NCBI GenBank assembly: GCA_000320545.1
Contig: ADNK01003302.1
Span: 62,001 to 126,000, forward strand
DNA: 64,000 nt
Direction: 5' to 3'
DNA from: Bigelowiella natans CCMP2755
Lineage: Eukaryota > Protista > Cercozoa
In this document: positions 3,757 through 57,388 of the stretch, piece by piece
Layout: each line of letters opens with the position of its first letter
How positions within the stretch are numbered: position 1 is the stretch's first letter
The notes under the pieces: model-generated
What the model was told of the DNA's origin: nothing
Seen by the model: only the letters and a program-made list of their open reading frames with translations
Databases searched by the model: none
Translations under genes and position numbers: made by a program

Positions 3757-3844
3757 AGCTAAGACGGACACAACACAAATCAATTGAATTGATTCAATGG
3801 TCATCCTCATGTAGCTGCTGTGCAATGCAGCGGCTACAGCGCTA
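3757..3844 (-). repeat. Dispersed convergent-junction element, copy B
   Basis: Reverse complement tagcgctgtagccgctgcattgcac...gctacatgaggatgaccattgaa...tccgtct aligns by eye with 28461-28547, 41385-41493 and 57317-57388. Confidence 0.75.
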
Positions 3845-3923
3845 CCATTGCTAGCATGTGCAATGAAGCAATTTCGATCGAACACACATGCATTGATGAA
3901 TGCGTAGCGCTGCTGTGATGATA

Positions 3924-4595
3924 ACGACGAAATGAGAGCGCCAGCTTGCTAGCTTGCTGGAATCGGGGCAGTCTAGCAGTGCATGTGGAAGGCGGCCAAA
4001 CAAAGAGAGACACTCGGATTTGGAAGGGCACGTTCTCATTTTTGTTCTCTAGCTCAGAGGAAAGTTCACGTGGAGGCAAAGACGACTGCGTCAAAGATTT
4101 TGCCCACCGCCAATCCCATGCAAAATCCAATGGGAAAGTTGCATGCACTAGCACATGACATGGAAAAGTGATGGTTTCCCCCAGCTGAATTCGGAGCTCG
4201 ACCAGTGCCTTTCATTTGTCCTTCCAGGTTTTCTGGAACTGGAGAAAAAGGAGACTTGTTCCACGATGTGCGAGAAATCTTGCGATGTGGGGCAATGGCG
4301 CGATGCTCTGGCGATGATTTTTGCATTGCTTATTATATGGATATGCTTTGTCATTTTGACAAAAAGAAACGTGCTGTGCCCATGTGTTTTTTGCCATGTC
4401 ATTCTAGCAGCTCAGTTCAGCACTAGAGCAGCAGGTCCGCAGCAGTGGGCAAAAGCTTGGGTTGTGAATTTTGGGGCATTTTCCTGCCACATGAGCAGAT
4501 TTAGAGATGGTCAGAATTTGAAACTGGGGCATGATGTGTGCTCTGTTGCTAGCGTGTGTCAGCTCAGAAGCTGCTTCTAGCTTCGGTCCGATCTG
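3924..4595. mobile_element. TpA-depleted intergenic tract, probable degenerate non-autonomous transposon relic
   Basis: Hand count: 8 CTAG, 1 TTAG and one 4-TA island (4331-4343); otherwise no TA in ~670 nt. Shares aatcccatgca[a/g]aat (4112-4126) with 44977-44991. No TIR or TSD identified. Confidence 0.4.
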
Positions 4596-5081
4596 CTACC
4601 CTGCACAGTACCGCTACGTAGTCCGCCAACAATGACATCACGCGCGCAACAACGTGCGCAATGACATCTACGTGAACAGAATAGAACGAACAACAGTGCT
4701 CAGTGCACGACAGTGCACAGTGTTGCCACATGCGGTAGCGCGCCATGCTAGCATGGCACTAGCTAGCGGCACACATGCACGCTAGCGCACGGCATTGTGC
4801 GCCTACGCACATGATGCGAACCTGAGGCATTGCCATTGCATTGCGGCGTGCTCTGCTGGCTCTGCTAGCGCACGTGCTAGCGTGCGTGCCTGTGGTGCGT
4901 GCACTCTTGCTTTCACGTGCACGTCTAGCTAGTACGTTGGATGCGATGTGACAAATTGCCAATTTCTTTTCATCAGTAACTTCAACAGTATGCGATGCGC
5001 AATGGCATCATGTTAGTGTCACAGATTCTTCAAAGCCTCTCTGCCGCATAATTACTAAGCAGAGAAGTTGAGTCATCATTT

Positions 5082-53300: not shown

Positions 53301-56300
53301 TCTACTGAACGCAGTCGAAAATGCCGCTGTGAATGATGAACGACTGTGTTAAATAATTCAACTTCCAACTTGATCTTCCTCGTTTCCTCTTTCCGCTGTA
53401 CTTATGAGATCATTTAAATGATGATAATATGTCTTGGATGAGTCAGTTGAAAAGATTGGACATCATCTCTTCCATCATCCTGATCTTCTTCTTCTTCTTC
53501 TTCTTCTTCTTCTATCAACAGTTTCAGCAGCACCAATCGAATGGTAGCTTCAAACTTGGGATTGGTATTTGGGCCAAACCTTATCCGCAGAGGAAACGCC
53601 TCCCCACATCTTATGGCCCAAGATACGGCTGCAACCGGTAGTAGTGATAGCACTCATTGCAGAGGAGCGAGCAGGGGGGGGTTATTGGATGGATGGGATT
53701 GCACACATTCATTGTTGTTTACCAGATATTCTAAATGGTATATTCGTGAAATCAATCAACAGGTCAAGTGACCTGCTTTCTTATCGAGAATAGTCTCAAG
53801 CTGTTTGGCCCTGCAAGGATAAGAGGAAGTGGGGCTGCTTCTTCTTCTTCTGCTACTGCTGCTGCAGATGTTAAAGGAGGAGGAAAAGACAGGATTTCGG
53901 GAACATCATCATCATCCATGACAACAAGAAGGACTGGGACCCGCAGTCAGAGTCAGGTGTTTCCATCAACCGTCGGCCTCGGCTACTCTGCTGCTGGAAT
54001 CATCGGTATTGATGATGATGATGATGATGATGATGATGATAAAAGATGTCAAAAATGAGACGAGGGGGGGGGGCAGGAATACAAAGACGTGCATCATCCT
54101 TTTCCATACTTTGAGAAGGAATCTCACCGATTGCACCGATGATGATTTATATATCCTGCGACGACGGTCACTTGCCGTCATATCTCATGGACATGAATCA
54201 TTTGCTACTTTTCCTAGATAGATCTTCTAGAGGGTTCTCCCCTTCTCATAATCATAAGTGTTTGTGTCGTGCTAATATCCAGGAGGGGGCCCTGCGTCTG
54301 CACCTAATTCTCCCTATGATCCATCGAATCTGTCCAGAGGGACCGGGGGGCAGCATGCTTCACTTAAGCATCCGTCTACAAGAAATAGTGACTACTCGGA
54401 TATGAAAACAGCAACAACAACAACAACAGGAGGAGGAAGCTCCTTAAGCACTCTTCTTAGCAGCAGCAACAACAGAGATGGTGGATATACTGTTGTCCCT
54501 GGGATTGCCAATGGAAATGGGTCCTCTGAGTGCCCACGCCTTTCCAGAAAAGCATTGCAGCTCAGGCAAAAATGCCTCGATTCGTTCATGGTGATGGCTA
54601 TGATCTTTACTGTGGTTGTTCTCATTGTTCTTATTATGATTTTCGTGGAATGATATATTGAATTAAGAAGTCACGTGGTTGGTTCTGACAATAATATATC
54701 AGGAGTGGGAGAAAATGCTGATTCAAGCGCGTGTACACATGCGGCATAGATGGGCAACATATGCCTCTAAAGCAGTCTCCAAAGAGGCAGGTCCAGATGC
54801 TGTCAAGGCTGCAGAGGAAGGTCAGCCGCAGTAATAGGAATATATGACTCACGAGTGAACGGAGTCGTTTTTCTCTCTATGTTTTTCTTCTCATCTGTTA
54901 CCTCCTCACGAACTACTTCACTTGAGCGTGAGAGTGTAATAGTAGTATTAGCGATAATTGTCTAATTTTTCCTTATTTACACCAAAAATAATGACAATCC
55001 CAAGGCCTAAAGCGGTTTGTGGAATCTCATCTGAGGCGAGAGGGCGCATTGCGTCAACGTGTGAAGGAGATGTACAATACCCTTGAAGTATATGAAATGC
55101 ATAAGGCAGCATCATCATCAGACCCTGTTGTTATTCCTGGTACGAGCTCTATTGCACCTGCTGCTCATAAGGCCGCCGCTACCGTCAAAAACCCACATCG
55201 ACCTCCTCCAAAGGTGGTGCTGAGATTCATGAATGTGCATGCATGTGTGTGTGTGTGTGTGTGTGTGTGTGTGTGAGATATATATATATATATATATATA
55301 TATATATATATAGAGATAGAGAGAGAGAGAGAGAGAGAGAGAGAGAGAGAGAGAATAGCGGCGCCAACACTCCAATATTTGCCGCAGATGACACGAGAGT
55401 CGCTGCTGATAAAGAGCTCAAGTTTTGATAAGGTATGAATCTTTTGCTGCTGGTACTCTGTGTAAGAGTAATAGAGAACATATGATTATCTCGCAACATC
55501 CATCAGTCACTTACACACAGTGGCTTCATATCCCCTTACAGGTCCGAGGAAGCCTTAGTGCAAGACGTCTATCAACTGCCTCTTCTCCTGGCGTTCAAAC
55601 CCAAAAGAAACCTAGTACTGCCCTTCAGAAATTTAGGCGTGCATCAGCGGCAGGAAGAGCATTGTTGGCCGCAGCTAAAAGGTACTATTTGTTGACTTTC
55701 ATGACCGACGCACACAAGCACGATAATCGGCCACGTAGCCGAGAGATGATATGTAGTATATAAGGTGAAGGATTAAGAGGCATCGGTGGGAACCTTCTCT
55801 CATTCTCTGCTTCCCTCCTCCCCCCTCCCCTCGTATGTTCTTGCGGCCTCTCCCTATAGGGCAAAATCAAACGCGCTCGTCAAAAAGACAACGGGGAATT
55901 CAACGGGAGGAGGAGGAGGAGGAGGAACAGCAGCAGCAATAGCAAACACATCAGCATCGAAGAAGATAAACCAAAAGAAGGTGGCCATTAAGAGACTCGC
56001 TATAGCCAGGCACAAATACACTGGAGGCTTTAGGAAGAACGAACTTCTATTTGGAAAAGGTGGTTATTTTCCCAATCCTCCTTCTTTAGATAGTAGTAGG
56101 AATTGTTGTTGTTGTTGTGGTTGTTGTTGTGGTTGTTGTTGTTGTAGATGCACAATTGAATACTACTTTCTCATTTCAGGAGAAGTAATGGCCGTAACGG
56201 ACGACACGGATGCACGCGGAAAGGTTACGTATTATCACCGAGAAAAATAGTAGATGGAATGGGGAGAACGAAAGAATGAGGAGACAGCAGGAGGAGATCG

Positions 56301-56769
56301 AGATTTATCGTCCAACATGCTAAATATGCACAACTTTCAGGGCTGGTGGTTCGGATATGTCAAAGCGAACCCAACCCGCGAAGGATGGTTTCCTGCGGGC
56401 TATGTTCAGACAATTGGTTTCAAGGGGGGGGCACCACCACCTCCAGGTAGTAGTAGTAGTAGTAGTAGTAGTAGTAGTAGTAGGGTATATTAAAAGTTAT
56501 AACCAATAACAAATGGCTAGGCACCTCAAAGTTAACAACTTAGGCTGGTGTCTGCAACTTCATGCATGCGTGCGTGTGTGCGTTCAGCTAAAAGCATTTA
56601 TTACCCATATAAATGACTCTATTTTAAAAAAGAAACACATGTTTGTACACGATTACTCTCAGGACCACCACCGAGCAGAGGTAGCGTCATATCTACAAGA
56701 AGTGCGAATGCTGCTGGTTCCCAAAAATCTAGAAGAGTGAATAGATCACTAACAACGATCTCTCAGTAA
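50330..56769 (+). CDS. PH-RhoGAP-SH3 protein (multi-exon)
   Basis: PH: CEGNLKKRG...FKKRYFVL...LFYF...WLQAI. RhoGAP: EGIFRVPG (Arg finger), LAGVLK, NRMVASNLGLVFGPNL. SH3: AIARHKY...ELLFGKG...GWWFG...EGWFPAGYV. Middle and 3' exon boundaries are less certain. Confidence 0.85.
55245..55353 (+). repeat. Compound (TG)n-(AT)n-(GA)n microsatellite in intron
   Basis: Three abutting dinucleotide runs. Confidence 0.9.
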
Positions 56770-57316
56770 GTGGCTATGAGCATGGTCTGAACCGCCACAA
56801 AGCGGGGATCTGTACCACCACAAAGCGGAGATATTGGAAATTCTGTGATGTTCTAGCCGGCGACGTTGTCGTCCTCATTTGTTCGTGTTGTCGGTTTATA
56901 TTGTATATGGCCAAACATGAGTTGCATGGCGTGATACTGAGGTCTTTCTAGGTTGCATAAAACAAACTAAAAGGCTGCGTAATTTTTTAGAATGCGTTAT
57001 GTTCTCATCAGATTTCGCCGCTTGATCGCAGCATTAATCAACCATGGCCATGTCAGATAATAATTTTTTCGCCTGCATCGTTATATATATTTGACACTTT
57101 CGACTCTCACATGCATGAATGACAGAACAGCAAAACGAACATATGTAACTTGAGTGATGTAACCGCTGCTTTGCATGACTAGATGCATGAAGATGACGAT
57201 TGAAAAAAATGACTGTTCGCTGCATCCCTAGATCCGTCTGCCATGCACATGTGTATAGCGAATATGTTTATGTGTGATTGCGGAGACCAATGAGACCAAT
57301 GCAACAAACAAAATCT

Positions 57317-57388
57317 GAGCGCTGCAGCCGCAGCATTGGGATGACAATTGAAAGAATACAATTCATTCATTGCAACCGTCTCATATGC
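57317..57388 (+). repeat. Dispersed convergent-junction element, copy C
   Basis: gagcgctgcagccgcagcattgggatgacaattgaaag...ttcattgcaaccgtctcatatgc. Confidence 0.75.

Follow-up and report, generated by a model that had tools for sequence, protein, structure and literature searches.

Truncated tails of a LINE in the spacers between convergent genes of Bigelowiella natans

The SIDERs of Leishmania are degenerate ingi-derived retroposons that have been co-opted in 3' untranslated regions (3'UTRs). For the stringent long interspersed nuclear elements (LINEs) ZfL2-1 and ZfL2-2 of zebrafish, recognition of the cognate 3' tail has been shown (PMC4176376). Dictyostelium TRE5-A inserts upstream of tRNA genes (PMC3159450), the Tf elements of S. 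pombe avoid convergent gaps, and the retrotransposons of S. osmophilus are mildly enriched there, with 24% of the elements in 15% of the intergenic length (PMC10085805). Here we analyzed a 64-kb window of the alga Bigelowiella natans CCMP2755 (positions 62001 to 126000 of contig C435 in assembly G000, which comprises 91,405,885 bp in 3,736 contigs), in which a short element recurs between the 3' ends of convergent genes. This element is the tail end of a LINE with two open reading frames (ORFs), encoding an apurinic/apyrimidinic endonuclease (APE) and a reverse transcriptase (RT); near-identical intact copies are present in the same genome, and the copies in the window are 5'-truncated stumps. 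Taken as a whole, the explanation that these are LINE tail stumps placed in convergent spacers has, in our estimate, a probability of about 0.9.

Like the SIDERs, the stumps are short LINE-derived relics that lie by the thousands close to gene 3' ends, but copy 1 of the window lies outside both neighboring mRNAs, intact masters persist, and no sign of co-option was seen here. The likeness to ZfL2-1 and ZfL2-2 is that a cognate 3' tail would be recognized, as the last codons are kept at the nucleotide level; those elements belong to another clade, however, and the putative signal here overlaps coding sequence. As with TRE5-A and the Tf elements, a defined class of "safe" sites is occupied in a gene-dense genome. 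The differences are that these sites are convergent spacers of genes transcribed by RNA polymerase II (Pol II), the opposite of Tf1 and Tf2, that the confinement is far stronger than in S. osmophilus, and that targeting is here only proposed. A literature search of incomplete coverage returned no account of this LINE family and no LINE so strongly confined to convergent junctions.

The element spans the final ~25 codons of ORF2 with its stop codon and then a 3'UTR of ~24 nt. In copy 2 the stop codon is found at 28516-28518 and the 3'UTR at 28519-28542, and translation of 28447-28518 gives the ORF2 C terminus in frame, with 2 to 4 residues different from L051 and P0015. A genome search with this copy returned 1,249 candidates, the best of which are 81 to 94% identical. 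Aligned copies (n = 46) share their 3' end base, after which TA/CA runs are common, and are ragged at the 5' end; stump lengths spread over 60 to 415 bp with a continuous distribution of 5' ends. Longer copies read as a protein C terminus with a CCHC knuckle, whose pattern is C-x2-C-x7-H-x3-C in P0015 and similar in P0016 to P0020. Eleven genomic frames end in the 99-amino-acid (aa) peptide upstream of the element. Eight of them, each on its own contig (C515, C3064, C2903, C2179, C1129, C1193, C2494, and C3306), are 1,179 aa long, and the other three measure 1,255, 1,198, and 1,173 aa; all 11 also hold RVT_1 and Exo_endo_phos_2 matches. The tail peptide alone gave only chance matches in Pfam and only fragments in a word search. 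At least two subfamilies, at ~85% and ~62% identity to the query, are present among the genomic frames, and the many copies with open frames and equal scores suggest recent activity. The whole element could be read in L051, a metagenome contig, where an ORF1 of 483 aa overlaps the start of an ORF2 of 1,158 aa (PF14529, E 1e-17; PF00078, E 2e-16) and the sequence ends in the motif of the element. L051 has no long terminal repeats as read, and its extreme 5' end may be cut; its ORF1 matched no Pfam family. Short stumps of the same LINE end are also present on three other metagenome contigs (L052 to L054), in two of which the called gene on the right points at the stump. A second young RT family, present in far greater numbers, has 1,659-aa frames of equal scores and also 1,873-aa frames and occurs at more than 100 places in the genome, for example at C668:16061-16489.

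The original prediction, made from the letters of the window, had placed four copies at the positions and on the strands where we also find them. Left out one at a time from the nhmmer profile, copies 1 to 4 were recovered with E values of 7.6e-15, 7e-20, 6.8e-6, and 8.4e-11, and every one of them outscored 200 shuffles in alignment to long LINE ends; the core of copy 1 (3843-3787) aligned to the end of L051 with a score of 89 versus a shuffle maximum of 29. Reversed sequence gave no match below E 0.47 with a profile built from other loci. The statement that there is one copy per junction was wrong, as the same leave-one-out search found a fifth copy (E 7.3e-11) in the junction at 57 kb, which it shares with copy 4. 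A weaker match suspected in the fifth convergent junction, at 16396-16437, is not significant: its score of 25 lies below the 30 reached by the best shuffle (shuffle mean 19). Four of the five convergent junctions of the window thus hold one or more stumps (Table 1). Copy 2 extends further than had been predicted, over ~264 bp. Just upstream of it, a weak LINE-end match at 28080-28147 (E 0.1 to 0.5 in the window) may be an older, eroded stump. The duplication inside copy 2 is, judged by its absence from the sister copy L016, a later insertion into the stump.

Table 1. Positions of the stumps and of neighboring features in the window
Feature	Position	Strand	Remarks
LINE 3' stump, copy 1	3757-3850	-	~90 bp; end of ORF2 and 3'UTR
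LINE 3' stump, copy 2	28281-28544	+	~264 bp, the longest in the window
CTAG + 4-bp duplication within copy 2	28373-28384	no strand	Not in sister copy L016 (alignment)
LINE 3' stump, copy 3	41387-41493	-	Several small insertions; score 41 vs shuffle maximum 27
LINE 3' stump, copy 4	57290-57386	+	Internal deletion of ~13-20 bp
LINE 3' stump, copy 5	57104-57240 (about)	+	Carries CTAG + 4-bp duplication at 57224-57235
Convergent spacer without detectable stump	16234-17016		5 CTAG scars
ChlH (magnesium chelatase), 3' part	245-3452	+	Pfam PF02514; stop at 2974
Nearly silent convergent spacer	3453-4846		Copy 1 and seven CTAG + 4-bp duplications
Glycoside hydrolase family 5 (GH5) gene	4974-6785	-	Pfam; RNA contig 4974-6785

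Two other kinds of mobile element have to be weighed against a LINE tail. In a true short interspersed element (SINE) the LINE tail would be shared and the head would be its own, transcribed by RNA polymerase III. Many copies are indeed ~100 bp long and start near the same conserved core, but Rfam and tRNA scans of the window gave no match, and what copies share upstream of the core is LINE ORF2, with 5' ends spread continuously, which leaves a SINE very improbable. The element could also be the terminal inverted repeat of a DNA transposon or of a miniature inverted-repeat transposable element (MITE), with the 37 outward-facing pairs found within 500 bp as its two ends and an end that reads TG...CA beside TA. 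Against this, the element is in frame with the RT/APE ORF, tandem pairs (103) exceed outward pairs, paired arms are only 76 to 84% alike and of unequal length, and most copies are single, so we give this idea hardly any credence. L051 and the 1,179-aa frames of the genome refute an eroded inverted repeat of this kind as a candidate. The original prediction had offered a SINE or MITE as one of its two readings: a mobile element it is, and its restriction to convergent ends is supported, but the element is neither of these and is instead a 5'-truncated LINE 3' end.

As to relatives, the nearest RT is that of the P0016 family from environmental runs, which is 43% identical. Fish elements (P0017 to P0019) and P0020 were the best RT matches, with 28 to 29% identity and E values down to 5e-31; the fish relatives bear an RNase H and end in a knuckle. 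A quick unrooted RT tree with 11 unlabeled matches and long branches grouped the B. natans LINE with these best matches (SH-aLRT 100), apart from a set without the knuckle. By these matches, whose clade names are inferred, the LINE would be I-group-like (I/Nimb/Ingi-like), with which it shares the APE-RT-CCHC layout. An RNase H domain after the RT is usual in the I, Nimb, and Ingi clades. The B. natans LINE differs in its long branch and in that Pfam mapped no RNase H to the genomic frames or to ORF2 of L051; P0016, by eye, has a longer insert after the RT that is possibly a degenerate start of an RNase H.

The placement of the stumps was assessed over 114 kb of C435, where a self-trained gene model together with Pfam gave seven convergent, seven divergent, and two tandem junctions. 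Stumps occupy five of the seven convergent junctions and none of the nine others (0/7 divergent and 0/2 tandem; Fisher p=0.005), with six copies in 9.1 kb of convergent spacer compared to none in 27 kb of other noncoding DNA. This comparison bears out the claims that divergent regions and introns lack copies, and no profile match fell inside a confidently predicted intron. Gene calls are too poor to give a junction type for one strong copy upstream of the window and for three on C712, a contig of little use for junction statistics because it consists mostly of giant ORFs. Around 29 other loci, 25 of the 28 called flanking genes point to the stump in a strand-symmetric score (p=2.7e-5), compared to 60 of 122 flanks (49%) that point inward in control windows. 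The convergent bias therefore looks genome-wide, as far as a small sample with modeled genes can show. One exact 11-mer from the tail occurs 1,697 times in the genome, versus 39 for a control, and about two of the seven stumps in the 114 kb keep it; extrapolation from this retention and from seven stumps per 114 kb gives a genome total of roughly 5,000 to 6,000.

The convergent setting that had been claimed for the four copies stands most firmly at copy 1, where Pfam and RNA agree. At the junctions at 28, 41, and 57 kb it is supported by ORFs, the self-trained model, and one Pfam match (dihydroxy-acid dehydratase, minus strand). At copy 1, poly(A) sites could be mapped relative to the element, as had been proposed. 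The ChlH site at 3452, defined by 12 reads with untemplated A behind it, lies ~305 bp from the stump, and the GH5 transcript ends at ~4850-4975, ~1 kb beyond it (minus-strand 3'-end reads in bins 4847-5240). RNA depth in the spacer between them is 0 to 1.7, compared to 75 to 162 over the ChlH 3'UTR. The few sense reads that map on copy 1 run off into foreign sequence and thus come from other copies. Copy 1 therefore lies outside the transcript 3' ends of both neighbors, a result from steady-state RNA at this one junction. The second reading of the original prediction, a domesticated bidirectional terminator or boundary element, agrees with the convergent bias and with ~0.7 to 1 stump per convergent junction by a rough count, but it does not agree with these distances. 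Moreover, two of the seven convergent junctions are empty and others hold two to four stumps, the cores are broken by deletions and insertions, including the 8-bp insertions in copies 2 and 5, and the LINE family is still young. We consider such domestication improbable.

The stumps share their spacers with small scars, a CTAG with a 4-bp duplication, of which there are one to nine in each convergent spacer of the window (3453-4850, 16240-17000, 27500-28900, 41000-42200, and 56600-57800), some inside the stumps. Convergent spacers hold 39 of these 8-bp scars over 9.1 kb, divergent gaps one over 8.7 kb, and predicted introns none over 25 kb. At 44731-45513 and at ~63000-64000, scars cluster where there is no LINE stump. 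The dihydropyrimidine dehydrogenase-like gene is followed by one of these clusters, at a tandem junction, so that the scars track gene 3' ends and not convergent ends only. The observation that copies differ at TA, TG, and CA sites reflects a real excess, as transitions in the stump alignment affect 12.2% of consensus TpA sites versus 4.0% of other T:A sites. Its direction is not established: the odds ratio is 3.4 relative to the consensus and 0.85 when polarized on L051, and C:G sites are also often changed. Hypermutation of TpA to CpA or TpG has been reported in this species (10.64898/2026.01.13.699255), and the changes in the stumps are in line with it, with a direction that polarization does not settle.

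Stump tails also cluster with each other. There are 152 tail pairs 60 to 500 bp apart, compared to 14 expected if copies were spread uniformly, as if the copies were confined to very roughly 8 Mb. Of these pairs 103 are tandem, 37 outward, and 12 inward; when closer pairs are counted there are 23 inward pairs, 11 of them tail to tail at less than 60 bp, and the orientation bias falls to p=0.03 to 0.09 once the short inward pairs are included. Often the 5' end of a new copy directly joins the TA tail of an older stump, which explains the 103 tandem pairs and the 11 close tail-to-tail pairs. At C3271:5806-5919, C1395:47584-47738, and C797:4121-4274, one member of an outward pair seems to be an inverted tail of ~13 to 25 nt at the 5' junction of a longer stump. 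Such short inverted tails suggest priming from both ends of one break. The outward-pair excess is suggestive and fits either this priming or insertion antisense to the nearer gene.

In the mechanism that we propose, built on established LINE biology, ORF2p would bind the 3' end of its own RNA, nick the DNA, and reverse-transcribe from the tail, usually ending after 80 to 400 nt, so that stumps would be sharp at the 3' end, ragged at the 5' end, and followed by a short tail of alternating TA/CA. Insertion would prefer promoter-free DNA between convergent poly(A) sites, that is, TA/CA-alternating DNA and the tails of older copies. Selection against insertions elsewhere would reinforce this placement. 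Afterwards the stumps would decay neutrally by CTAG + 4-bp insertions and probably also by TpA hypermutation. Reverse transcription of LINEs copies the 3' end first, and the core of the element is probably conserved because it is copied first and overlaps a putative RNA signal recognized by ORF2p. Close to the stop, nine identical residues in a row are encoded by the same codons in P0016 DNA, compared to 35% of identical residues that keep their codon in the rest of the comparison, where the longest run is six. By eye, both families can fold a stem from the same GGA across the stop codon with different inner pairs; the predicted stem has 5 bp and at most one compensatory pair, a count that depends on gap placement. 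The codon-level conservation and the stem are weak evidence that would fit cognate 3'-tail recognition as in stringent LINEs.

Several observations weigh against the explanation as a whole. The intact element was read in context in the metagenome contig L051 only, and the young full-length genomic copies are represented by their ORF2 frames. No convincing target-site duplication was seen, in alignments that are over-extended, with poorly defined 5' junctions and eroded flanks. Three called flanks point away from their stump, 29 of the 57 scorable flanks are uncalled, the 29 loci were chosen by likeness to copy 2, and gene orientation beyond the first junction comes from the self-trained model. 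Insertion into older tails makes up part of the pair clustering, so the 8 Mb is a rough figure. Shuffled sequences fold as well as the predicted 3' stems do (z-scores not significant), and the codon identity could come from a swap of 3' ends between families.

A small sample supports the near-exclusive placement of stumps in promoter-free DNA bounded by the poly(A) sites of convergent genes. Whether this is brought about by targeting or by selection can be argued from both sides. With purifying selection only, insertion would be random, and in so compact and intron-dense a genome the convergent spacers alone would offer DNA free of promoters and of transcription. At copy 1, the DNA beyond the two poly(A) sites is nearly silent, promoters are located in divergent and tandem gaps, introns in B. 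natans average 184 bp (PMC12730881), so that an insertion of 100 bp could disturb splicing, and a large algal population would make even weak selection effective. On the other hand, even the 8-bp scars are missing from the predicted introns, divergent gaps of 1.2 to 2.4 kb are empty, and intact L051, in one case, abuts scar-rich DNA of the spacer type. We consider selection alone a serious possibility at somewhat less than even odds. The chance that targeting contributes appears to us to be even, so that we lean slightly to it; it is favored because the unrelated and presumably near-neutral 8-bp scars show the same confinement and because new copies start in older TA tails. A host function as the cause is unlikely, and so is any cause of another kind. 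A more specific and tentative idea, on balance doubtful, is that the LINE is actively steered to zones of convergent Pol II termination, by termination chromatin, supercoiling, or a tethering factor, and tends to insert antisense to the nearer gene. We know of no tethering factor for this LINE.

Apart from the genes already mentioned, Pfam matches in the window, with single ORFs as queries in the homology searches, comprise a SNF2 helicase; the others are ChlH, the GH5 hydrolase, the dihydroxy-acid dehydratase, and the dihydropyrimidine dehydrogenase-like protein. The last of these is a large open frame at 45513-48305 on the minus strand, with the animal-type domain set (4Fe-4S, FAD/NADPH, and DHO_dh). 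A frame with a poly(A)/nucleotidyltransferase-like domain at 10891-12591 (plus strand) adjoins an ORF at 12778-16233 (plus strand) with a CNOT1 CAF1-binding domain, and the two may be one spliced gene or neighbors. On the plus strand of C712, three adjacent giant frames (37528-50973, 50853-111143, and 111080-146908; L034 to L045) run for 4,482, 20,097, and 11,943 codons without a stop and are rich in T, S, V, and G; Pfam matched nothing convincingly in the leading 3,000 aa of the largest, and these are possibly giant surface proteins.

The repeated element is thus a real feature of ordinary identity and moderately unusual placement. A candidate regulatory element is removed, since the motif is retrotransposon debris, and its placement remains the point of interest. 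Intact copies, a culturable alga, and mutation-accumulation lines make the choice between targeting and selection directly testable, and the stumps provide thousands of reporters of the same origin for the TpA hypermutation described in this species (10.64898/2026.01.13.699255). If true, steering to termination zones would be a new form of safe-harbor targeting, perhaps shared with the process that leaves the CTAG + 4-bp scars.

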